Shown here: one piece after another, positions 685-42,745 of the stretch
How positions within the stretch are numbered: the first letter of the stretch is position 1
How the letters are laid out: the number at the start of each line of letters is the position of its first letter
Assembly: GCF_964204645.1 (NCBI RefSeq)
Contig: NC_134034.1
Location: 2,356,072-2,420,071, forward strand
Origin: Tubulanus polymorphus
Lineage: Eukaryota > Animalia > Nemertea
Length of the DNA stretch: 64,000 nt
Direction of reading: 5' to 3'
Position numbers and translations under genes: made by a program
Notes under the pieces: generated by a model
What the model saw: only the letters and a program-made list of their open reading frames with translations
Told to the model about the DNA's origin: nothing
Databases searched by the model: none

Positions 685-3600
685 CTGCGCAAATATCTTG
701 TAGAGCGGTTCGAGAATGAATTCGACGAAACTACGCTGTCCGCTCGACGACGCCGGTTTCTTCATAAATCGATGCCTGTCAAACAGAAATCAGATACAAA
801 ATGTCAGATGAAGACCCACGGGCTTCAGTAGGATCAACTGAGTGCAGTTTAATCTTGACCACAAAAATCAATTTGTTCTGGGATTTGCAAAAACGTATAA
901 AAGATGAAATGAAATCTTGGTGCACAGTACCACTATGTAGCGAGCGTGTTCAACTATGATGATGGGTTTTCTTTCCCAATGACTCAATACTAGTACACAC
1001 GATTTTTCTAATAGCATGGTTCCCACAGTTATATGAATTAAAGATTCCCAAGTTTTTCCCAAGTATTTCATGGGCGATATTTTCAATTTTCCAAACTGGA
1101 AATGAACAGATATCGTCATACTACAGTCGACATTTTAGTAGTGACTGGGTGATTAAAAGGTGATTCCCGAGGGAAATCGCTGAAGAAAGTTACCCTTGTG
1201 AAATGCGATACGCGAAATGTAAATGAATTTCCCAAATAATTCCTCGATTCGAGGAAAATTTTTCAAATTCCCAAATATTTCCAAACCGGAAATGATTATT
1301 TCAAAATTCCCAAGTTTTTCGCAATTTCCCCGTTCTGCGGGAACCATGTAATAGACAAATTCTCAAAATTCAAGGAGTTTTCAATTCAAGGTCTTTTAGG
1401 CATTCTGCTCGAATTCAAGGATATTTGAGTACTGTGAAAAACATTTTTTGGTTCAGAAGGAGTTTTCAAGGAAATCGACGTTGGGGGACCCTGGTTGGAT
1501 TCTAGGACAATTGCACCCCTCCCCCCCCCCGAATAAAATCCTTTTTGATTTGGATTAACACCACCTAAGTACTTTACTAAGAAATTCATTTGACGTTGTG
1601 TGCAGATCAAAAACTTAAAATCAGTAAAGAGTAATTAGCTGCACTAATTAGCTAGAATTAGTTCGCTTCGTCTGATTAATTTGAAGTAAATATCTGCGTT
1701 AATTTAAGATTAAAAAGATTTAATTTGGGGGGGGGGGCAATTGTTCCGGGGTGAACTCACGTTTTCGAGTTGTAGTAAACGTCGCCCCACAGTCGTTTGT
1801 AGAACTCGTCGACGTTGATGTCGCCGTACGAGTCGTTGTAGATCGTCGCGAACGACTTCAACGTGAAACTGAACCGGTAATACGAACTGGCGAAGCAGAC
1901 GTTGTTCAACAGCGGCGAAACGACCAACGCTTCCTCGCCCTCCGAGTATAACCTGCAAAACACGACGAAAGAAATCACGATTCAAATACACATTGCATAA
2001 ATAGTTTTCAGGGCGGCCACTTTCATTGACTTGCTTCTTGCCCTGACATGTAGGTTGTTTTTCCTGACTTGATCTGCTAAGAATCCGATCAATTAACACA
2101 GTCACATACTTACGTTAGACATAAACGGTAACCGTTACGATCTAGCTGTTTCAAAAAAAATTCCCCTGACATTTTAACTTTTTCATTGAATATTCCCAGA
2201 CTTTTTTAAAGAAAAGAAAATTTCCCATCTTTTTTTAAAGAAGAGAAAACTTCCCGACATTTTCTGATTTCCACCCATGTACCAATCCCTGAACTTTCAT
2301 TGATTTTTCCCACAAGATTACACAAGATTACACTCAACTTTCTTTATAGAGGGCATCCCCTCAGAAATCATACCGATTTTCGCTATGAAGTAACAAGTAT
2401 ATAGACGGCATCGCCCTCCAAGATACAGCTCTTAGAGCCCGTGAAGTAACTAAGTAAGAACTTACGCGAGCAAGGCGTTGACCTCGTCGATGATGTTGCG
2501 CAGTTTGTAATAGGCGTCGGTCGGCGGCAATTTCAACTCGAGTATCAAGCGATCGATTTTATTGATGCACAACGTGACGGCGAGTTTCTCCTGTATCGCG
2601 TGTTTGATCAGACGCTCGGTGTTCAGCAGAACGCCCTCGGCGGCGTCGACGAATATCACCGCGCCGTCCGCGATACGGAAAACGGCGGTCACCTCGTCCG
2701 AGAAATTCACGTGGCCTAGATAATAAATAGAAATCGCAGTAATTAATTAACCCCTACTTCGCATCTACACCGTGGTGCAGAGTATTAACCGGCGGTGGAC
2801 TTACATCAATACACCGCATCTCGGTGTATTGATGTAACCTGTAACATAGTGAAATATTAGTAACTAATGATACATACACCGCACTGTGGTGTAGACGCAC
2901 TATAGCGGTATACCCGTTATTCAACACATTGGGCATACAAGGCTGCTGCAGCAAAAAAAGGATCCCCTTGTGGCAAGTGAAGATCCACCTGGTTAAAGGA
3001 TCCACCAGGTGTCGCTAGTGTGCAGTAGGACATCGACAACAAGCGATAAAGGATTCCACTAGTGGAAAGTGATGATCCACCAGGTGCCGCTAGTGTGCAG
3101 CAGGACATCGACAACTAGCAATAAACGATTCTACCAGTGGAAAGTGAGGATCCACCAGGTGTCGCTAGTGTGCAGTAGGACATCGACAACTAGCAATAAA
3201 GGATTCCACAAGTGGAAAGTGAGGATCCACCAGGTGTTGCTAGTGTGCAGTAGGACATCGACAACTAGCAATGAGGGATTCCACTAGTGGAAAGTGAGGA
3301 TCCACCAGGTGCCGCTAGTGTGCAGCAGGACATCGACAACTAGCAATAAACGATTCTACCAGTGGAAAGTGAGGATCCACCAGGTGTCGCTAGTGTGCAG
3401 TAGGACATCGACAACTAGCAGTAAGGGATTCCACTAGTGGAAAGTGAGGATCCACCAGGTGTCGCTAGTGTGCAGTAGGACATCGACAACTAGCGATAAA
3501 GGATTCCACTAGTGGAAAGTGATGATCCACCAGGTGTCGCTAGTGTGCAGTAGGACATCGACAACTAGCAATAAAGGATTCCACAAGTGGAAAGTGAGGA

Positions 3601-6600
3601 TCCAATCGGTGTCGCTAGTGTGCAGTAGGACATTAACAACTAGCAATAAAGGATTCCACTAGTGGCAAGTGAGGATTGAGAAGTTGAGTAAAATGCCCCA
3701 TTGGTAGGAACGCTATTTGGTGGGATCGCTGGAGACACAGAATGTTACTTTACCTGGAGTATCGTAAATATTGAACAGGAACGACTTCGACTTAATATCC
3801 GGCAGGAGAAGCGTAACGGGACTCGATTTGATGCTTAAACCGCGCTGAAAAACAACGAACGCAGAAATCAGTTTTCAAATTCGCGAATAAAACCGATGAC
3901 GACGACGAGAAGTAATTGGCGAATGAACTTAATTTGAAAATGTTCAAATTTCCCGATCGTGTAGACGTTCAAATTTGAAAAGTTACCGAATCGCCTTTTT
4001 AAAAATAAACGTACCTCTTGTTCGGTGAAAAGTGTGTCGGTATAACGCAGCTGGATAAAGATAAATATCGAATAAATTATTTTAATGAGAAACCAGGGAA
4101 AACTATCTACTTTAAGCCGTGGCTTTTGAAAACTTTTCCAGGAAAGCTAGTCCTCGATCAAGCTTTTACTTCGACTTTGGCCACCTTACAACTTAAGCTA
4201 ATCTAAGACTCGTCCATATTTGACCTAGTTTTAAGACTTAAGGAGTAATAGGCTACTTACATCTTTGCCCTCCAGTGGAGTAATTTCGGGGTGAGTTTGT
4301 TCCATCAAACAATCGACGAAAGTCGTCTGGAAAAAGAAATATTATTTCTTCTAAAAACTTCTGATGAATGATGTACGTTTTTCAATCGTAACTTTCACAA
4401 CAAGAATCAGATCGATGAACGATGCCAGTGAAGACACTTAAAGACATTCAGATTAACAACGTAAGGGTAGAAGGGAAGGGTACTTACCTTTCCGTGATGC
4501 AAATGGCCGCAAATGGCGATATTTCGAATGAGCTCTGTACCGTCCATGAGATCGGCCATAAATCTGAAAATAAATTCATACATACAGTTATCAAATACGA
4601 CAAGAACTACGAGATATCTTGTAGTGGCAATGATGGCTGAACTGGAACTATGAGATATCTTGTAGTGACAATGATGGCTGAACTGGAACTATGAGATATC
4701 TCATAGTGACAATGATGGCTGAACTGGAACTATGAGATATCTCATAGTGACAATGATGGCTGAACTGGAACTATGAGATATCTCATAGTGACAATGATGG
4801 CTGAACTGGAACTATGAGATATCTCGTAATGACAATGATGGCTGAACTGGAACTATGAGATATCTCATAGTGACAATGATGGCTGAACTGGAACTATGAG
4901 ATATCTCATAGTGACAATGATGGCTGAACTGGAACTATGAGATATCTCATAGTGACAATGATGGCTGAACTGGAACTATGAGATATCTCGTAATGACAAT
5001 GATGGCTGAACTGGAACTATGAGATATCTCGTAATGACAATGATGGCTGAACTGGAACTATGAGGTGACTCATAGTGACAATGATGAGTGAACTGGAACT
5101 ATGAGATATCTTGTGGTGGCAATGGTGACTCAACTGAAACTATGAGATATCTCATAGTGGCAATGATGGCTGAACTGGAACTATGAGATATCTCATAGTG
5201 ACAATGATGGCTGAACTGGAACTATGAGATATCTCGTATGACAATGATGGCTGAACTGGAACTATGAGGTGACTCATAGTGACAATGATGAGTGAACTGG
5301 AACTATGAGATATCTTGTGGTGGCAATGGTGACTCAACTGGAACTATGAGATATCTCATAGTGGCAATGATGGCTGAACTGGCACTATGAGATAACTCAA
5401 TAGTGGTAATGATGGCTGAACTAGAACTATGAGATATCTCATAGTGGCAATGATGGCTGAACTAGAACTATGAGATAACTCATAGTGGCAATGATGGCTG
5501 AACTGGAACTATGAGATATCTCATAGTGACAATGATGGCTGAACCGGAACTACAAGATATCTTAAGAGAGTGGCAATGATGGCTGAACCGGAACTATGAG
5601 ATAACTCAATATAGTAGTAATGATGACTGAACCGTAATTTTGTAAGAGTATACTAATAGCTGGAAGCAAACGCGTTAAGGGTATAAAGGGTTAATAAATG
5701 AACATACTCCATATCGTAAGTGGTCACCGGCAGCTCCTGGTCGACGAGACTCATCGTGAATTTGTGTTTTTTAACGGGCGCGATGATCGGTTCGGTGAGC
5801 GCCTGCGTGTCCTCTTCCTGTACGATCGTTTCGACGTCCGGACCGTAGATCTCCTCGGCCGACGGGTAATACTTCTTATCCTCGTGCAGGACGACTTGCA
5901 TCTCGTTGGCGTCGTCGTCCACGGCGCCTCCTCCCGCGCCGCCGCGATCATCATCCATCTCTTCATCCTGATAAACAGAGAAAAGAATAACAAGAGCGTT
6001 ATTACAGCATTCAATTGCTTCCATCTACGGCCAAAATCTGTTCTTAAGCGGCAGGGGCCGGTTACATAGTCATGGCTTAGACTTTAGACCAACTTAGTTC
6101 TATAGCCAATCTTGCAACTTAAGACCAGTCTTAAGATTTAAGATCACTTTTGGACATAAGTCACGGCTGGTCAACTGGTTGCATAGTCATGGCCTAGACT
6201 TAAGACCAACTTAGTTCTATAGCCAATCTTGCAACTTAAGACCAGTCTTAAGATTTAAGATCACTTTTGGACATAAGTCACGGCTGGTCAACTGGTTGCA
6301 TAGTCATGGCCTAGACTTAAGACCAACTTAGTTCTATAGCCAATCTTGCAACTTAAGACCAGTCTTAAGATTTAAGATCACTTTTGGATGACTTAAGTCA
6401 TGACTATGCAACTGGTTGCATAGTCATGGCCTAGAATTAAGACCAGTCTATGACCAACTTATTTCTGTAGCCAATCTAACAACTTAAGACCATTCTTAGG
6501 ATAGGATTTAAGATCACTTTTGGACGACTTAAGTCATGACTGTGCAACTGGTTGCATAGTCATAGCCTAGACTTAAGACCAGTCTATGACCAACTTAGTT

Positions 6601-33287: not shown

Positions 33288-35115
33288 TTCTACGAGCAGT
33301 CAGTCGGTGTTAAATCCCGATCAGAAAACAGACTCAAACCCCGTCTGTTAATAACGTGCGCGCAACTGACGATCTCGAGTCTGAGGTAGATTAAATTCAC
33401 CTCCTCAAAACTCGCAGTTTCATCGTTAAACGCGCCGATAAACGGCACCTCATCGTTCGTGTCGATGAGTCGCATGCTATCATCGTGATGCGAAACCAAT
33501 TGTTCTCATATATCTTTCTCTCGTCAGAACCAGTATTCTACCGCGGGGTGAATTGAAGCGAAATAATACGTTCCGAGCTCTCGGCCTCGACATGAAGCGC
33601 GCTTGAGTTACCTACACAGGCTAATAGTGACAACAAACCGATAATTTCTTCCGTATTTTAAATCAAACAATGGCTGAATTTTTCGATTTGGCTCGAAAGC
33701 AGTTCAGTTTGTTTTTTTAGCGTTGAAAAAATACATTCCTTCTCACTGTAGCCAATGTTTGTCCGATCAGTGAACAACGAACGCAATGTGGTACCCGCAG
33801 CGCTACTGTGCCATTCGAGGATTCCACGTATGGCAGGCGAGGATCCGACAGGTGTCGCCAGTAGATAGTTGGTCCGCGTTCAATTTCCTTCTTCATTTCA
33901 ATTAAATCTGAATGAACTTTTCTCTAAAATGACTCGATTATTTATGCAAACTATACCCAAATCCGATAGGAAGAATGAAAGTATTTCATATTTGGTGAGT
34001 CCTGTGATAGTATACGGACTCAGGAGTCTAAAAATCCAGTTCAAAGTAAATTGAAAATGAATTAGTGTCCACAACGAACAACCTACTGCTCGTCACGCCA
34101 TCTGGCGGGATAGCTGGTTATGCAGGTTCCCCATTACGTATTTATCACTTCTCGAGAAGGTGCGAGCGCTAAAACGAGGATTCGACAATCTACTGCGGCA
34201 ACCGAGGATTTCACTTGTCCAGTCACCAGATCATTTCGTGTGTATAGTAAGTTTCATTCGGATCCACCAGGTGTCACTTGTGTACATCTGTAAATTTGTA
34301 AAAAAAAATCGGCCCCGACCAAGTTATATGGATCTATTCATCTCTGGAATGCAGAATCGTGATCTAAGTAGTCCCTTATATCAGTAAGACAGGAGCCGCT
34401 TCCGTAGCCAGGGCTTGGACCAGTATAAGACTATATTAAGACTGCGGAACCGGCCTCTGGTGTTTTTTGATCTTAAAATAGGGATTGACCCTGTGATTTA
34501 TTTGATTGGTAAATTTCGTTTGATTTTTTGATTTGGTGTCCCTTACAAACCCACCACACCTGCCGGGAACGAAACAGGGGGTTTGATTTTGAAATCGGAA
34601 ATCGAAGTACAAATATAGTTGTGTGATCGGCGGTAGAGTTTACAGAATTTTTTGTTTAAATCGAAGTACATAATTTGAAATTTTCGGTTCCGGTTCATTC
34701 AAACAATCATCCAAGCAGTCTGAACCGGCAAGCGACTGATTGGGGTTAATTTAGTTGGCTGCCTAATTTAATACATCAAGATTTAGGAAATAACTATATT
34801 ACCTGGTGTTAGATGGTTAGATCGGCTCAGTCTAATATAGGTCTTAGGTCTAGAGAGCCATCGCTGTACGACCTGCCCCCAGGTTTATGTTGAAACTGAT
34901 CGGTCGAAACCACCTTACGTCGTTCCAATAAGCGGGAAACTTAGATGAAAATGCCAAATAACCTAACCTGTAAGTTATCGGCTACATTGAGCGAAGAAAC
35001 CCTTGAATTAGTAGCTTTTTACAGATTCCCTTTTGCGAGTATTTGATTTCACGGTAATTTAGATGAGCCTAAACATATCGCGACAAAATGGTGACTTTCA
35101 TTACTTTGTTTATAG

Positions 35116-35203
35116 AGGGGATAGCGCGTACGCAGTCCCCCACTACCAGAAATTGTACACCCGAGTCACCCACATTTGGGGAGATCGTATGGGTCAACCA
35201 GTC
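35116..35203 (-). ncRNA. RNU1: U1 snRNA, 3' half (interrupted gene)
   Basis: Minus strand GACTGGTTGACCCATACGATCTCCCCAAATGTGGGTGACTCGGGTGTACAATTTCTGGTAGTGGGGGACTGCGTACGCGCTATCCCCT gives stem-loop III, Sm site AATTTCTGG and stem-loop IV. Confidence 0.95.
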
Positions 35204-37733
35204 TTTTTTTTTTTTTTTTTTTCTTTTTTTTTTTTGCCTCAGATACTACCATATATATTGAAAGCCTAAAAATTTTAAATGATGTGCTGTAGTAATTAGA
35301 GAGAGATTCGACTATGTCTATAGAAAAGTGTTCAAATAGGTATGTTAAAGTTAAGTTGGCGGCTGATGTTTATTGAGAGCTAAGAGCTAAAAGCAGTGAA
35401 AATGAAGCGAGTTTGATATGGCAGTCGGTCTCGTATCCTAAATATCGGATACGATAGTCCTTCATCATTGGCTTTTTGTTTTTGCTTAGGGTTAGGTGTA
35501 TTTGGATTTTGGTAGGTTAGTTTCCTGTTGTTTGACTATGTGCTGCAAGAAAGGGGGACATTGTAATAGTTAAACAGTTAAATAAGCATTTAAATATTTG
35601 AAAAGTTGGAAAAGTCTTCTGCTTTTCGTCTCGAGGAAAAAGGAACCTGAAAAGGAATTAAGAAATTTCTTTGAATTAATGGCGCGCTGCGCTGCGCTGG
35701 CGCTGCAAATTTGCTTTGCTTATTCGCTGGTACCAATAGTAATAATTTGGTGTAGTCAAAGGATTTTCTGTATAAGTTATAGTACGTACAGGTGGGATAG
35801 TACTAAATACGTGGGATGTAATCTTTTATTATTTATCTAATTTTTACGTAATTACATATACGTATAAGAAACACTGTTTCTTTGCCAGTTAGTGTAGGAT
35901 AGAGTTTCGTTGGGTATGTTAGCAGGTAGGGAAATTTTGGGTTTGTGTCGGAAACGACTATAACACAAGTTTCCTGCGGGGTGTATACATTAAGAATATG
36001 TCAAGACGGGTAACAGCATTTAATAAAATAGTGAACGCTGTTCGGGGGTTATCAGGGTGACGGTTCTGAGTATACATATGTATAATTAGGATATTATATA
36101 GTTTTGATCTACAGTATGTTGCTATAGCATTACACACTGTAGATCTGCATAAGGTTTAATGCCAGTTTTAGACAGTTTATGCTGGATTACAGCGTGGTAT
36201 GATATCTATTATAGAGTGTACGTAGCTATTTTCACAGCAGTACGTACATAAGCTTATGTAAAAGGAATACATAAATATGCTTATATATACAGGTTCTATA
36301 TAGAGTTGGTGTCAGGAGTTCATCTACCAGTCATTTCACTTTGGGTATTTATAATAGTATCGTTTGAGGGTGGATTTGGAAGTTAGATCAAGGGGTATTA
36401 GAGGTTTTCTATGATCTGTAATGTGTAGCTATATAATATATTTACATATGCATTACACATAAGACAGGTCTGTTTTTGCTGCTGATCTTTTTGGGCGGTC
36501 GTTCGTATCAAGAGACGCCTGTGCATAATATTTTCCTTGGTACGAGATAAAAGGTGTACCAATAATGTATATGCCTTGAATTCCTTTGGGCTTTGACAAA
36601 CGCAGATCGTTCATGCAGAGGAGACGGTTGTCAGATATACGTATTCGTCGAAAATTGGTAGCGTAATAATGAACGTTACATTTGGGGTAATTTTCAATTG
36701 TGGGGTATCAGAGTGAATATTCTGATTTTGCAGAAGTATAGTCGGGAAACTAGTTTTGATCTATAGTGTATAGCTTTGTGCATTACACAGTACAGATCTG
36801 CAGATTTGCCGTTTTCTGAAGTGTACGTAGCTATAAATACAGCAGTACGCACAGATGCATATGTATAAAAATACATACCTATATATGTATAGTTGGTCTT
36901 ACAGCCGCTTCGCTTGGGGTTTTACCAAGATAACGTATTATGGTGGTTTATACGGTGTGTAGCTATAATATATGTTGAAGCAGTACACGCCTGTATTAAC
37001 CCACAATTTTATGCAGCGGTGATAGTCTTTCAGATATTCTATATCTCAGCATGTGTAGTGCAGATACAGAGATTATTGAAAAGTAAAAGGGAGGTTCCGT
37101 TCATGTCAATACATATTTGACTTCCAGGTTTAAACTCCTCTTTTCAAAGCGTATTTGGAGAGGATGGTTCTATAGTATAGTGATCACACATATGAAGAGT
37201 TTGGTATTATATGGTTGTGTAGCTATTATTGTACAGCAGTACACACTCTAAACAACCCTGTACTTTTATGTACAGTCACGTAGAAACTCCTGGAGGAAAA
37301 GGAAAGAAAAAGTTGCCGTTGGTTTCAATCTTTCTATTAGCAAGCAGAGAGAGGATCATATGGGTTATAATCTTTACATATTTGAAAGTAGATTCGTTAC
37401 AAATTAGGATCACGCGTGTGTCGAGCCAGGTTCATATTGGGATATTGTATATATGTTTATAGACGTATTACACGCATGTAAAGAGAATATGATTTGTGGT
37501 GGCGGATTTCCAGAGTTTTAATGTACGGGCATTCAAGCGTAGTATAAATGGTTATAAAGGGTTTGCCCCGATATTATTTTTGAATATGTATGAAATTTTA
37601 GTGATGTATACGTACATATCTACATATACCGACATATACATACGTATCCATATATACACACATATACATATAGACGTTGTGTTTTTGAAAAATAATACCA
37701 AAACAATACTGCGTACATAGACTCAACAGTTGT

Positions 37734-40700
37734 TTACGATATATTAGTATTTCTGATTTTATTTTCTCTTCTAAACTTTGCTATTTGATTTTTAAATTCT
37801 AGTATAGGGGGTATAGGTATAACGTTTTTATGCTTAGTTTGGTTTCTGTGTTTCCAAATGATGAATTTATAGGTTGTGATAAATATATTGGCGTTGTTCT
37901 CAGCCTGTTTGTCTTTGTACTTAAATTTAGGATGAAAGAAAAATATCAGTTCCCTATCGAGGGTATTGTTCAATAAGGTATCTGAACTCGTATTTTTCAG
38001 ATATTCAAGCAGAGAAGTTTTTATGGGTTGTATATGTTGACACAGTATAAAGGTGTGATCTAAGGTTTCTTTTTGATTACAGTGTGGGCAGAAGGCAATG
38101 TATTTACCCTTTGACATGGGTAGTACATCATGTACAATCCTGTAGTTCAGTTCCTGGAAGTTGTCAGGCATTGTTTTTGACCAGATGATTTTCCAAATCT
38201 TTTCGTTGATTAGATGAGGGTTTCTTCTTTGGATGTTAATTTTAATTTTTTCAAATTTAATAAGGTGTAGGTATAGAGTTTTCAAAGTGTCTGTCGGTTG
38301 GGTCAGGTCATATCCATTGTCTTTGATCTCTTGTTGTAGTAGATTGAGTATCTGATAGTCTGGTCGAGTGGTTAGTTTTAATGGAATGTGTCTTATATCA
38401 ATATTAGGGATAATTTTCTTGATCTTTAATGATCCAAAGGCATAAATAGTGAAGTCAGCCCATTGTGGATATATGTGTTGCATGGTTAGCTGTTTTAGTC
38501 TAATAATTTTTTGGAAGAGGTGTGCTTTGGCTTTTTGTTTTATATTCGTAACTCCACATCCTCCTTTATCTAATGGTAGGTACATTGTTTCTCGAGATAT
38601 TGTCGGCATTTTATTGTTCCAAATGAAGTTAAATAATTCTCCTTGGAGTTTTTGTTCATACATTTGGGGGAGTGGGATAAATTTTGTTATGTACCATAGT
38701 GTGCTGAGAATATAAGTGTTAGCTAAAGTCGCTCTCTGTCTAAAGTTGATGTTTCTAATTGTCATTATTTTAAAAGTATTAGTAATTTTTTCCAAGAGAG
38801 GTGTCCATAATTCTGAATTTGTCACTTTCCCAATTTTTAGTCCTAAAATCTTAATAAAGTCTTTAATATATTCTGTCGGGTATATATATTGTGGTTTAGG
38901 GTTTATCGAAAGTATTTCTGTTTTTACGGTATTTATTTTGGAGCCGGAGGCTTTACTGTATTCGTTAAAAGTTTCAAAGGTCGCATGCATCTCATTTGGA
39001 GATCTAATAAAAACATTCGTGTCGTCAGCATATTGGGTTAGTTTAGTTAAATTTTTACCGCCAGGATGCATTATACCAGAGATATTGGGGTTTTTCCTTA
39101 TCATATTGCCTAGAGGTTCGATACATAAAACATATAATAACATCGATAAGGGACACCCTTGTCTTACTCCCCTTTGAATTTCTACAATATCGGTTAGTTC
39201 ATTGTTGATAATGATTTTAGATTTGGGTTTTTCGTAAAGGATGTGTATCCATTTCTGGAAGTTTGGTCCGAAATTATATTTACTAATTACTTTAAAGAGG
39301 AAGTTATGGTTTACTCGGTCAAAGGCTTTTTCCTGATCTAAAGACATTATAGCTGCATGTGTATTAGTGTTTCGGATATATTGAAAGATATCTTGGGCCA
39401 GATATATATTATCAAAGATTTGTCGTCCAGGAATGCCACATGTTTGGTCAGGATGGACAATTTCTCCTAAAACTGTTTTCAATCTTGCAGCTAAAACTTT
39501 TGTTAGTATTTTATAATCCACATTTAACAACGAAATTGGACGCCAATTTTTTAAAAGTTCCAAATCACCTTTTTTTGGAATAATTTTTATATAAGCTAGT
39601 TGTTGCGATTCTGTGAGGGATTGAGCGAGGAAGATGTTATTATACAGTTCAGTTAATTCTTCTCCTATGTTTTTCCAAAAAGTCAAATAAAATTCTTTAG
39701 GTAGTCCGTCTGGTCCAGGCGTTTTATTGTTTTTCATGTCAGTTAGTGCTTTAAAAATTTCATCGGTAGTTATAAAATCTTCTAAACGGTCCGCATTTTC
39801 TTGTGTTAGTGTTTTATCTATATAATTAGTAATTTCCTCTTGTTTGGCATCGTTCAGGTTTTCTTTGGTATATAGGTCTTGATAGTATTCTTGTGCGATC
39901 TTTTTAATTTCTTCAGTGTTTTGGGTCGGGTCATTGTTTTTATTTTTCAAGGTTTCAATGATAGTGTTTTTATTTTTGGAGTCCAAAAGTCTCTTAATAT
40001 AAATGGGACTGCTTTCGTCTTCAAAGTAATTGTCAGATTTGCTTTTAATTTCATTTCCTTTATTTTTATGGGAGAGTATAGTATTGAGTTCTTTTTTAAT
40101 ATTGTTTATTTCGGTTGCTAATGTTTCGCTAGGAGTGTCATTATATTGCTGGGATTTCAAAGTTAGTTCTTCGTCAAGACTGTTTTCTGCTAATTTATAT
40201 TTTTGGGCTTGTTCTATAGTGACTTTATTAATGGATCTTTTAAATTTTTCTTTTAAATTGTCCCAGGCGTCGCGTGCAGTCATGTGTTTTTTAGTGTAGT
40301 TTCTGTAATGATTAATATCGGCTTTAATTGATTGTTTAAGTTTCTTATTTTCTAATATGCTAACGTTGCATTTCCAGAGTGCAAAGTTTTTGTTTTTAGG
40401 TCGTAAATTACTAGTAGAGATTGGATCCAGAAATGGTATTTCGATTTGAACTGCCTGGTGGTCGGTAAAAGCTATTGGAAAATGTCTTATAGTTGTTTCT
40501 AAAATGCGTGAGTCGTTGGTATAAAATCTGTCTAATCGGCTAGAGGCGAGTCTATAGACAGATTTTCCTCTAGGCATTCGTGTGTAAATAGTTTTATTGG
40601 GATATTGGTGTCTGAATATATCTATGAGTTTATTATTTTCCAAAAATTGACTAAAGAATTCTCGTATACGTGTATAGCTGGGATCTAACTTATTTTTCGA

Positions 40701-41168
40701 GCTATCTAGGGGGTTGAGTATAATATTAAAGTCTCCAGCGAAAATAGTGGGGGTATTATCAACGCTAATTTTTTGTTCGAGGACTTTATAGAATTCTGAT
40801 TTTTGAAGATTTATAGCCGGGTTGTATATATTAATAATTCTTAATTTTGAGTTGCTAGTTTTATTTGTTAAATAGATGTGTGATAGTCGTCCTGGTATTA
40901 AAATCTGAAAGGTTATATAGTGTTCGGCTGCTATTATGTTGGGGATTAGAAAGATGGTTCCAGCCTGCTGTTTCGTGCCTGGGTTGTTAAAAATATGGTT
41001 GTTAGTCTTGTTTTCAAGGTATTTGATCGTTCTTTCAGGGGGGTTGTGGGTTTCTTGTAGTAGGATAATTGGTTTTCTAAATTTTTTAATTTGTGCGACA
41101 ATGTCTGGAATTTTGGTTGATAAGCCCTCAGTATTGAGGGTAACTACGTTTAGAGGATTTAGATCCAT
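37734..41168 (-). CDS. ORF2: APE endonuclease + reverse transcriptase + C-terminal zinc finger (1144 aa)
   Basis: Motifs TLNTEGL, LQETH, IYNP, AGDFN, SRLDRFY, TDH; PGPDG, WRPISLLNVDYKIL, LDQEKAFDRV, GVRQGCPLS, QYADD; CPHC...ETLDHTFILC. Confidence 0.97.
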   Translation of the reverse strand: MDLNPLNVVTLNTEGLSTKIPDIVAQIKKFRKPIILLQETHNPPERTIKYLENKTNNHIFNNPGTKQQAGTIFLIPNIIAAEHYITFQILIPGRLSHIYLTNKTSNSKLRIINIYNPAINLQKSEFYKVLEQKISVDNTPTIFAGDFNIILNPLDSSKNKLDPSYTRIREFFSQFLENNKLIDIFRHQYPNKTIYTRMPRGKSVYRLASSRLDRFYTNDSRILETTIRHFPIAFTDHQAVQIEIPFLDPISTSNLRPKNKNFALWKCNVSILENKKLKQSIKADINHYRNYTKKHMTARDAWDNLKEKFKRSINKVTIEQAQKYKLAENSLDEELTLKSQQYNDTPSETLATEINNIKKELNTILSHKNKGNEIKSKSDNYFEDESSPIYIKRLLDSKNKNTIIETLKNKNNDPTQNTEEIKKIAQEYYQDLYTKENLNDAKQEEITNYIDKTLTQENADRLEDFITTDEIFKALTDMKNNKTPGPDGLPKEFYLTFWKNIGEELTELYNNIFLAQSLTESQQLAYIKIIPKKGDLELLKNWRPISLLNVDYKILTKVLAARLKTVLGEIVHPDQTCGIPGRQIFDNIYLAQDIFQYIRNTNTHAAIMSLDQEKAFDRVNHNFLFKVISKYNFGPNFQKWIHILYEKPKSKIIINNELTDIVEIQRGVRQGCPLSMLLYVLCIEPLGNMIRKNPNISGIMHPGGKNLTKLTQYADDTNVFIRSPNEMHATFETFNEYSKASGSKINTVKTEILSINPKPQYIYPTEYIKDFIKILGLKIGKVTNSELWTPLLEKITNTFKIMTIRNINFRQRATLANTYILSTLWYITKFIPLPQMYEQKLQGELFNFIWNNKMPTISRETMYLPLDKGGCGVTNIKQKAKAHLFQKIIRLKQLTMQHIYPQWADFTIYAFGSLKIKKIIPNIDIRHIPLKLTTRPDYQILNLLQQEIKDNGYDLTQPTDTLKTLYLHLIKFEKIKINIQRRNPHLINEKIWKIIWSKTMPDNFQELNYRIVHDVLPMSKGKYIAFCPHCNQKETLDHTFILCQHIQPIKTSLLEYLKNTSSDTLLNNTLDRELIFFFHPKFKYKDKQAENNANIFITTYKFIIWKHRNQTKHKNVIPIPPILEFKNQIAKFRRENKIRNTNIS

Positions 41169-41179
41169 GAAGATTTAAT

Positions 41180-42178
41180 TTAGACTTCAACAAATTGTAT
41201 GTTCTTTGTGGAGGTTTTCTTTCTTTTATCTATTTTTTCTTCGGGTGTGCTTCTCGGTCTTTTTGGGGTCGATGTTAGAGCCTGGCTCGACACACGAGGT
41301 TCGGCTTTATCATCATACGATCGTGTCCTAGGGGGATATATCGGTAGGTCGATCATATCTTTGTATATTTGGATATTATGGTCTACATCCAAGGTATATT
41401 CGGTTTGTTGGGATAATGGAGGTGGGAGCTCAAATTCCTGATCGTTTAGCTCATCGGCTTCCTCGATACTAGGTTCGGGGAGCGGTATTTGAGCCGGTTC
41501 TTGGGAAGGCTCCTCTACAGCATGTGGTATAACTACCGCTTGGGCATACGTTAGATGCTGTTGGTGATCTTGTGTTGCGGCTGCATCTTTCGGGCAGTCC
41601 TTTGCTATGTGTCCCCTCTCGCGACATACATAGCAAAGAGGAGGTTGAACTATCTGGCCATCGTACTTGACCGTGATTCGGGCTTTTTTAACGTACATGG
41701 TACGATTTATAGGTTTGTCTATGTAGCCCTTGAAGTGACGGACTCCCGAAAAAATTTGCGGGTAGTCTTTGAGGACTCCTCTTTTATGCGAAAGGGTCAT
41801 AAACCCATATTTTTCGTTAAGTTTCTTGGCAATATCTTGGCTTGCCAGTTCAAAAGGTGCACCATATATGTGAAGCCACACAAAGGGTTTCGTGTCGGAT
41901 GTTACGTTGGGTGCACGTTGAAAATTTATTCGGGTGCCTTTAATTGAGGGTATCTTATATTTTATTTCTCTTAGAAGTCCTCCAATCGTTCTGGAGTCAG
42001 TAAAACTGACCTCATAAATGTTGTCGGACGTTCTCGACACTTGGCATATTTCAGAGATTTCGATGTCGTACTGTTGGAGGAGTTTAATTATTTCTGTCTG
42101 ATTAATGTGCCTATTGTCATTATCGTCAGGCTCAGGCTCTAAAATCAGGGTAGCTGACCTGTCTAAGAGGGTAGTCAT
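41180..42178 (-). CDS. ORF1: nucleic-acid chaperone with a single CCHC zinc knuckle
   Basis: First ATG at 42178 (MTTLLDRS); CYVCRERGHIAKDC knuckle; acidic/Pro-rich then basic C-terminus; 11-nt spacer to ORF2. Confidence 0.9.
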   Translation of the reverse strand: MTTLLDRSATLILEPEPDDNDNRHINQTEIIKLLQQYDIEISEICQVSRTSDNIYEVSFTDSRTIGGLLREIKYKIPSIKGTRINFQRAPNVTSDTKPFVWLHIYGAPFELASQDIAKKLNEKYGFMTLSHKRGVLKDYPQIFSGVRHFKGYIDKPINRTMYVKKARITVKYDGQIVQPPLCYVCRERGHIAKDCPKDAAATQDHQQHLTYAQAVVIPHAVEEPSQEPAQIPLPEPSIEEADELNDQEFELPPPLSQQTEYTLDVDHNIQIYKDMIDLPIYPPRTRSYDDKAEPRVSSQALTSTPKRPRSTPEEKIDKRKKTSTKNIQFVEV

Positions 42179-42533
42179 AGTGCGTCTGATATATATATAT
42201 ATAAGTGCGAAGAGACAAAAGGTTATAATTTTAACAAACAATATAACAATTGACAGAGAAAATGTTAATGTAATAACTTTTAATTTTCAAAATGATATGA
42301 ACATGAAAAAGGTGCACTACAAAGTGAAAAGATTTCACCGATAATGAGTGTCTCCAGCTAGATTATGCTCCAGTCCGGTATCGAAGAGCTGATATATATC
42401 CGCTAAGTCTGCGAATTAGCACTGTTACAAGTATGGTATAATCCAGTAATCCAAAAGTGGTTTTGATGAAAAACTATGCACCTGGGAGTGGCGCGGAAGG
42501 CGCTACGTAAAAGCGACTAACACAACGCTAAGC

Positions 42534-42590
42534 TCCTTTACCGCCCTTGCCTCGGCCAGACATGATTAATCGATGATTATTGAGTAGTAT
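42534..42590 (-). other. Histone H4 mRNA 5' fragment (27-nt leader + codons 1-10) at the 5' end of the retrotransposon
   Basis: Minus strand ATACTACTCAATAATCATCGATTAATC ATG TCT GGC CGA GGC AAG GGC GGT AAA GGA = MSGRGKGGKG, the H4 N-terminus. Gly10 favours H4 over H2A. It lies inside the TSDs. Confidence 0.85.
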
Positions 42591-42680
42591 TGGGTCAACC
42601 AGTCTTTGTGCAATGACAGGCCTCGCCATAGGGGCACCGCCTTCCAGATCACGGTGAGCACCCCTGTGCCAGGTAAGTAT
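42591..42680 (-). ncRNA. RNU1: U1 snRNA, 5' half (nt 1-90)
   Basis: ATACTTACCTGGCACAGGGGTGCTCACCGTGATCTGGAAGGCGGTGCCCCTATGGCGAGGCCTGTCATTGCACAAAGACTGGTTGACCCA. Joined to 35116-35189 it gives 164 nt, the canonical U1 length. Confidence 0.95.
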
Positions 42681-42699: not shown

Positions 42700-42745
42700 T
42701 TTCTATATATACGACTGACCTTCTTGGTACCTGACCGGTGTCCAA
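42700..42745 (-). promoter_or_regulatory. Putative U1 promoter: PSE-like GACACCGGTCAGG at about -62 to -50, TA-rich box at about -30
   Basis: Position relative to U1 +1 (42680) matches snRNA PSE placement; the species consensus is unknown. Confidence 0.4.

Follow-up and report, generated by a model that had tools for sequence, protein, structure and literature searches.

What draws a retrotransposon into a small nuclear RNA gene, and is that gene the place to which it belongs? The question is raised by a 64,000-nt stretch of the genome of the nemertean Tubulanus polymorphus (NC_134034.1, positions 2,356,072 to 2,420,071; C10:2356072-2420071, hereafter the window), in which a U1 small nuclear RNA (snRNA) gene is split by a 7.4-kb, poly(A)-tailed long interspersed nuclear element (LINE) inserted in sense to U1. 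The feature lies wholly on the minus strand, and the coordinates given below for the window refer to that strand. Between the 5' half of U1 and the body of the element lies a short segment of histone H4 mRNA, and comparison across the assembled genome (268 Mb in 77 contigs) places the relatives of the element in H4 itself. We conclude that the element very probably belongs to an H4-specific L1/Tx1 family that moves as an RNA borne by the H4 promoter, and that U1 is a recurrent secondary target of this family and not its home.

Histone H4 as the home site

The 54-nt leader of the window element (42534-42587) is 100% identical to the H4 genes of a histone array and comprises the last 24 nt of the H4 5' untranslated region (UTR), the ATG at 42563 and ten codons (MSGRGKGGKG). 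The same 54 nt recur every ~10.2 kb at C10:8.357-8.427 Mb, on the window's own chromosome, where the 10.2-kb array unit encodes H4, H3, H2B and H2A together with histone 3' stem-loops. All seven assembled H4 genes are found in this array, six of them intact and one occupied; this figure, like the U1 occupancy given below, is a lower bound, as assemblies often collapse tandem arrays. In the occupied gene, at 8.39 Mb, H4 runs up to ...GGCGGTAAAGGA and is followed by the element, an A tail, GGGCGGTAAAGGA and the remainder of H4, with a target-site duplication (TSD) of (AA)GGGCGGTAAAGGA, 13-15 bp in length. Elsewhere in the array one histone unit is spaced at 12.7 kb because of a 2.4-kb insert that separates the TATA-like box of H2B from its ATG (L038:6170-8584; C10:8383169-8385583).

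A decayed stretch of the array at 8.52-8.66 Mb is crowded with related elements, all co-oriented with H4. At three loci (L028, L032 and L033) the 5' part of H4 stops at the same nucleotide and is followed by the 5' ends of diverged elements, and at a head-to-tail junction (L029) what is left of the H4 TSD stands between the A tail of one element and the 5' end of the element that follows. Insertion after ...GGTAAAGGA is observed in L025, L028, L032 and L033, and is recorded in the leaders of the window copy and of a second full-length copy on chromosome C12. The proteins encoded by open reading frame 2 (ORF2) of the array relatives are 36-54% identical to that of the window copy, with a closer subfamily at 83-90%. 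At least three diverged lineages thus share one H4 nucleotide, at codon 10/11, with the young subfamily, in sense to H4 throughout. Since several diverged lineages occupy a single nucleotide in a single orientation, the family is target-specific for H4 and, on the evidence of these junctions, is an old, nucleotide-exact resident of codon 10/11.

The leader also bears on the origin of the element RNA. Its end coincides exactly with the family's insertion site in both the window copy and the C12 copy, and the latter has its start at (A)TTCGTACATTCG, 33 nt past the H4 TATAAAG box, which is the expected cap site. Because of these two features the RNA was most likely made from the H4 promoter of a master copy resident in H4. 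The H4 frame stops within 2-9 codons of the junction in the three lineages with a readable junction (two codons into the element in the window), so that the H4 ATG would open only a short upstream frame.

We infer target-primed reverse transcription (TPRT) as the mechanism of insertion from its sequence signature, namely a 33-nt A tail and a 14-17-bp TSD in the window and sister copies truncated at element nt 1506 and 3511, each with a TSD. Family members would insert by TPRT, in sense, after ...GGCGGTAAAGGA in the tandem histone array and would be transcribed there from the H4 promoter, giving an RNA that runs from the cap site through the H4 5'UTR, the ATG, ten codons and an early stop into the element. 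One such H4-headed RNA would have been reverse-transcribed into the U1 gene of the window, with a first nick just past the U1A-binding loop, between U1 nt 73 and 77, and a second-strand cut 14-17 bp downstream of it. The resulting copy would have lost the first ~51 nt of the leader by 5' truncation, and it would have split a U1 gene whose promoter was intact.

U1 as a recurrent second target

The junctions in the window were mapped against an intact 165-nt U1 paralogue (L011). The 5' half of the interrupted gene, U1 nt 1-90 (42591-42680), is identical to L011 at 90 of 90 positions and begins at 42680, reading downwards, with ATACTTACCTGG; it covers the end that pairs with 5' splice sites and stem-loop I, and reaches through the loop and 3' strand of stem-loop II. 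The 3' half, nt 77-165 (35115-35203), is identical at 88 of 89 positions, the sole mismatch being at nt 112, and holds the 3' TSD copy, the Sm site (35154-35146) and stem-loop IV. When joined, the halves restore a U1 of 165 nt that differs from L011 at one position. In a relaxed cmscan search the 5' half (42680-42500) matches the Rfam U1 model RF00003 at 50.5 bits and the 3' half (35276-35115) at 48.7 bits, compared with 126-142 bits for intact U1 paralogues; an Rfam scan of the whole window at the gathering score did not find U1 because each half alone scores below that threshold. The TSD begins immediately 3' of the stem-loop II loop CATTGCAC and its two copies are identical, the 5' copy (U1 nt 74-90, AAAGACTGGTTGACCCA) lying at 42591-42607 and the 3' copy at 35203-35190, or up to 35206 if the A residues are counted. 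Its length is therefore 14 nt with certainty and 17 nt with the A residues included.

Upstream of U1 +1, at 42703-42741, are a block resembling the proximal sequence element (PSE) of snRNA genes, ACACCGGTCAGGTA (42741-42728), and a TATA-like block (42715-42703); the promoter-proximal sequence contains the PSE-like ACACCGGTCAG and the TATATATA box. The PSE-like and TATA-like blocks are found at equal spacing upstream of 14 intact U1 genes of the type found on chromosome C10 and of a second interrupted U1, so that the gene in the window was an ordinary member of the U1 family, and these blocks putatively act as its promoter. The U1 genes of another chromosome, C3 (L001-L003 and L008), form a second class with a differing stem-loop II and differing promoter-proximal blocks, and none of them is occupied by the H4-LINE family. 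With the putative promoter intact and facing the element, it is plausible that transcription starts at U1 and continues into the element; snRNA-type promoters are coupled to 3'-box termination and are poor at making long polyadenylated RNAs. A U1-derived head is absent from all four young copies, and there is consequently no sign of the proposed chimeric U1(1-90)-H4-LINE RNA having retrotransposed.

The target sequence is carried by 16 U1 genes of the C10 type, two of which are occupied. At the second (C10:2099312-2103159) the 5' junction passes from ...CACAAAGACTGG to element nt 3511 over a CTGGT microhomology, and the 3' junction is A36-GA-GACTGG, compared with poly(A) directly followed by GACTGG in the window. 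The first nick is the same to within 1-3 nt in both insertions, while the TSD measures 14-17 bp in the window and ~7 bp in the second gene. These two loci share only ~270 bp of promoter sequence at 79% identity, their downstream flanks are unrelated and their elements are ~99% identical. Spread of a single U1 insertion by duplication was rejected, since the junctions are not the same and the flanks have nothing in common outside the promoter; to judge from these alignments, the two genes were hit independently. A third U1, which is intact, has an older 3' fragment of the family (80-89% identical) ~20 bp downstream of it, probably with a TSD of (A)nTGGAA. Three of the four known insertions outside H4 are found at U1 loci, which, with 16 such sites in 268 Mb, excludes chance for practical purposes, and U1 is a genuine, recurrent secondary target of the family.

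Other repeats are also found around U1 genes. On the 3' side of the old fragment (L005/L023; C10:1050900-1051300, minus strand) there are two inverted transfer RNA (tRNA)-like stretches ~300 bp apart (..GGTTCGAATCCCTGCC.. and its complement), and 1.1 kb beyond them is an isolated 3' fragment of U1 (nt 108-165). Two further U1 genes (L017, C10:1355343-1355500; L018, C10:1833410-1833565) are without their first ~21 nt and have a long poly(A) directly before them. By its sequence, poly(A) preceding U1 nt ~22 marks a different retroelement family. In L039 the 7.9 kb upstream of a U1 truncated near nt 22 contains no LINE ORF2, and that copy is therefore short.

The young subfamily is represented in the genome by only four copies at ~99% identity. 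In addition to the window copy (35204-42590), which is full length with both open reading frames (ORFs) open, these are the full-length copy at C12:11063550-11070908, which has one TGA in ORF2, the copy within H4 at C10:8390250-8396098 (truncated at element nt 1506) and the copy within the second U1. Their pairwise divergence is 0.3-1.4%, varying with the segment compared, and in the 5.8 kb common to three copies each carries 17-22 private substitutions (~0.3-0.4%). This star-like pattern of substitutions indicates that the young copies are of similar age, recent but not brand-new. All other LINE matches in the genome are at most ~30-39% identical and are located elsewhere.

The C12 copy occupies a different kind of site. 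Comparison with an empty paralogue reveals a blunt insertion between GGCTGAA and TGAGAG, with no TSD, in a repeat limited to that chromosome, for which we found no Rfam family, no convincing ORF and no RNA-gene signature. A small-RNA gene as the C12 target was rejected, since the target is an unrelated repeat without an Rfam family. This repeat (flanks in L024; L036 and L037; C12:7.9-11.5 Mb) is at least 1 kb long and is present in ~10-15 copies on C12 only, at 75-98% identity. Close to the point of insertion, part of the sequence (..ACTTACCT..) resembles the 5' end of U1 together with the box upstream of it, and has no Rfam match.

At its 5' end the window copy carries an extra ATA (42588-42590) between U1 and the H4 leader that, on comparison with intact U1 and the sequence upstream in H4, is templated by neither. 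The element's own 5'UTR (355 nt, 42179-42533) starts with a block conserved across diverged lineages, GTTGYGTTNGTCG..TAC..GCG, in which a small hairpin is possible (alignment A1, five lineages). The first ~30 nt of the element (window 42490-42533, A1 columns 37-64) are conserved among lineages that are otherwise ~58% identical, and the candidate 4-bp hairpin (CGCY / RGCG) shows one compensatory change and one G-U change. A U7 or Sm-like reading of this block was dropped, a relaxed Rfam scan there having given U1 only. ORF1 (41180-42178) is open, extends for 332 amino acids from its ATG and has one CCHC zinc knuckle. ORF2 (37734-41168), also open, encodes 1144 amino acids with an apurinic/apyrimidinic endonuclease (APE)-type endonuclease, a reverse transcriptase (RT) with the motif YADD, and a C-terminal Cys-His motif. 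The 2.5-kb 3'UTR (35237-37733) contains internal repeats and is integral to the element: the four young copies all have it, collinear at ~99%, and older copies in the array conserve it in part (84-91%). Its length is unusual for an L1/Tx1-type element and it carries an internal duplication (element nt ~5713-5888 versus ~6317-6544); no ORF of more than 80 amino acids was found in it, nor any Rfam family except a spurious low-complexity microRNA match. The poly(A) tail (35204-35236) has 33 nt, A12 G A19-20, including the one G.

In Pfam searches ORF1 matches zf-CCHC at 3.5e-6 and does not match Transposase_22; there is likewise no match to solved L1 ORF1p, and an RRM was not detected by sequence. 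A diverged copy (L030) has the same ORF1 start peptide (MTTLLDRS...). ORF2 matches RVT_1 at 2e-40 and Exo_endo_phos at 1.2e-9, while zf-RVT (E 0.0038, 18.3 bits) falls under its 27.5-bit cut-off, with a CxxC...H....C pattern visible in the translation. Residues 6-881 of ORF2 align to human L1 ORF2p (E 1.8e-74), and the catalytic endonuclease residues (N, E, D/N, D and D-H) and the RT YADD align with those of the human protein. By these sequence criteria the element is a retrotransposon without long terminal repeats (non-LTR), of the L1/Tx1 superfamily. Database relatives of ORF2 are unnamed, at no more than 32% identity over most of its length and up to 36% over partial matches, and a protein atlas gave only generic names for the element protein. 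CCHC-type ORF1 proteins (RRM/zf-CCHC, Type I variants) have been described for Tx1-like elements of non-mammalian animals, the mammalian proteins being of the coiled-coil Type II (PMC5203782). The CCHC-type ORF1 found here fits that description, and we place the family no more narrowly than in the L1/Tx1 superfamily.

Much of what a sequence-only reading of the window had proposed is borne out by this analysis: an L1/Tx1-type LINE with both ORFs open, a sense insertion in U1 stem-loop II, and an identical 14-17-bp TSD corresponding to U1 nt 74-90 after the U1A-binding loop. Excision does restore U1, to 165 nt and not to the 164 nt that had been given, which is the sole discrepancy in observation. 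The description of the insertion as young, drawn from the identical TSDs and open ORFs, holds in a relative sense, given the differences among the copies.

Explanations for the choice of U1

If the element were a U1-specific LINE, with stem-loop II as its proper target and the H4 leader as an incidental 5' transduction, then the two independent insertions at the same U1 nick and the one beside a third U1 would be accounted for. It is very unlikely that this is the case, as one young copy and every diverged lineage are at a single H4 nucleotide, the H4 leader ends at that nucleotide in both full-length copies, no copy has a U1 head and no diverged lineage was found inside a U1 gene. The sequence-only reading had looked towards a U1-specific element and had suggested searching for recurrence at U1 nt 74-90. 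Recurrence is indeed observed, in the form of the second, independent, 5'-truncated copy with the same first nick in another U1 paralogue, but specificity for U1 does not survive, since U1 genes hold two young copies out of four and no diverged lineage. The H4 segment that it noticed is real, and takes on the role of a trace of H4-promoter transcription now that the C12 copy is seen to start at the H4 cap site. L1-type elements insert widely, and of the four young copies one lies without a TSD in an unrelated repeat, so that the U1 position might be regarded as an ordinary off-target insertion without any preference. With 16 positions in 268 Mb, however, finding two of the three non-H4 young insertions at the same nucleotide has a probability of the order of 1e-14 (arithmetic from the counts), and we regard the prospect as negligible.

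Several points weigh against the reading that we prefer, in which an H4-specific element has U1 as its secondary target. The counts are small, the young subfamily having only four copies. When the H4 and U1 targets are aligned at the nick, without gaps and at offsets of -3 to +1, they have at most 11 identities in 32, and a fraction of 0.12 of random window positions equals this similarity, for which reason likeness of the two sites was dropped as an explanation. The targets share only AAAG(G)ACTGG, and its register differs by 8-10 nt. No full-length, ~99% identical H4-resident master is present in the assembly, which leaves the leader as the evidence for promoter borrowing; the missing master may have been collapsed, be haplotype-specific or have been lost. 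In principle an RT template switch onto H4 mRNA could also add an H4 leader, although this does not explain a junction exactly at the insertion site of the family in two copies.

For the preference of the H4-specific element for U1 we retain two possible explanations. The endonuclease, or some other DNA-reading part of ORF2p, may tolerate an H4-like site in U1, in which case DNA sequence by itself would account for the dual targeting, a tentative proposal to which we give rather less than an even chance. It is consistent with the nicking of two independent U1 events within 1-3 nt of each other, with the similar ends of the primer strands (..ACCGCCCTT in H4 and ..ACCAGTCTTT in U1), with the presence of AAAG(G)ACTGG in both targets and with the unhit state of the C3-type U1 variants, which are without the site bearing this motif; the nucleotide-exact insertion in H4 likewise favours reading of sequence. 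Nevertheless the nick-aligned similarity is no greater than background, the distance from nick to shared motif is 8-10 nt greater in H4 than in U1, the older fragment associated with U1 lies outside the coding region at a differing sequence, and a genome of 268 Mb should contain many sites of equal similarity. Attraction at the level of the locus is a more doubtful proposal, and we consider it somewhat unlikely: here the element's particle would be drawn to genes of histone and snRNA type, which are short, highly transcribed, non-polyadenylated genes of RNA polymerase II (Pol II), and weak preferences of the endonuclease would settle the nick locally. Histone and snRNA loci share nuclear bodies (histone-locus and Cajal bodies) and processing factors, and in T. 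polymorphus the histone array and the C10-type U1 genes are on the same 14-Mb chromosome. Three separate U1 loci have been hit; that one of them was hit downstream of the coding region, together with the lack of significant target similarity, favours this attraction. Against it, nucleotide-exact insertion in H4 across lineages argues that the home site is recognised strongly by its sequence, the family has not hit snRNA genes other than U1 or histone genes other than H4, and the fourth young copy, on C12, lies in a low-copy repeat that is unrelated and bears no RNA-gene signature.

A further conjecture, which we think improbable but worth stating, is that targets are found via the shared biology of replication-dependent histone genes and snRNA genes and not by DNA sequence alone, and that the window locus is a switch of target and promoter caught midway. 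If so, a full-length copy with open frames, lying in sense behind a U1 promoter that is still intact, could give rise to a lineage resident in U1, and would show how site-specific LINEs pass between multicopy gene families.

Comparison with known target-specific elements

Site-specific LINEs are known for ribosomal DNA (rDNA), snRNA, 5S and tRNA genes, telomeres, microsatellites and other transposons, and the coding sequence of a core histone would represent a new class of safe harbour. An H4-targeting LINE was not found in the searchable literature, which does not cover most subscription journals or Repbase Reports, so that its absence there is not proof. ORF2 identity among lineages as low as ~36-54% points to long specialisation on the histone gene, and dual targeting of H4 and U1 makes it testable whether target-specific retrotransposons change targets through endonuclease reading or through tethering to the locus. 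For annotation, the family explains why U1 genes on this chromosome are split, why one H4 unit is disrupted and why the histone array is decayed at one end.

SINEU retroposons have U1- or U2-derived heads and are mobilised by Tx1 elements, and these heads are attributed mainly to template switching (PMC4494074). The window locus resembles them in that a 5' part of U1 is fused to a Tx1-like element behind a U1 promoter. In contrast to SINEU, the H4-LINE family has no retroposed copy with a U1 head, and SINEU heads are not attributed mainly to insertion into snRNA genes (PMC4494074). The repeated choice of one position within snRNA genes is also a feature of the Utopia LINEs, which target U2 (PMC4640811), and of the Dada DNA transposons, which target U1, U6 and tRNA genes (PMC3706591, PMC8869645) and so have U1 in common with the family described here. 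The H4-LINE is not a DNA transposon, however, and whereas the abstract of PMC4640811 sets Utopia among elements introduced as encoding a restriction-like endonuclease, the H4-LINE is APE-type. Utopia is moreover dedicated to U2, while U1 is a side target of the H4 element.

Like R2 and R1 of rDNA, the H4-LINE family has resided for a long time at a single site of a tandem, highly expressed host gene (PMC4494074, PMC1919474). Further similarities are that no promoter of its own is evident, expression probably proceeding via host transcription, and that copies are tandem or nested, with dead units gathered at one end of the array. The host gene is, in contrast, protein-coding and transcribed by Pol II. 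R2 has a restriction-like endonuclease and a 5' end freed by a ribozyme, whereas the H4-LINE retains its host leader, which is copied into new insertions.

Close parallels are also found among the target-specific LINEs of the Tx1 clade, which include Keno (U2), Tx1L (in Tx1D), Mutsu (5S rDNA), Dewa (tRNA repeats), and the microsatellite elements Kibi and Koshi (Kojima and Fujiwara 2004, summarised by PMC4494074). In common with these, the H4-LINE is an APE-type L1/Tx1-group element that has a poly(A) tail and a TSD, its insertion into a multicopy gene is nucleotide-exact and in sense, snRNA genes are among its targets, and transcription of the target itself is likely to be needed. It differs from them in that its home is protein-coding sequence, at H4 codon 10/11, and not an RNA gene, a transposon or a microsatellite, in that its leader is the 5' end of a Pol II mRNA including the host ATG, and in that the family has in U1 a second, unrelated and recurrent target.

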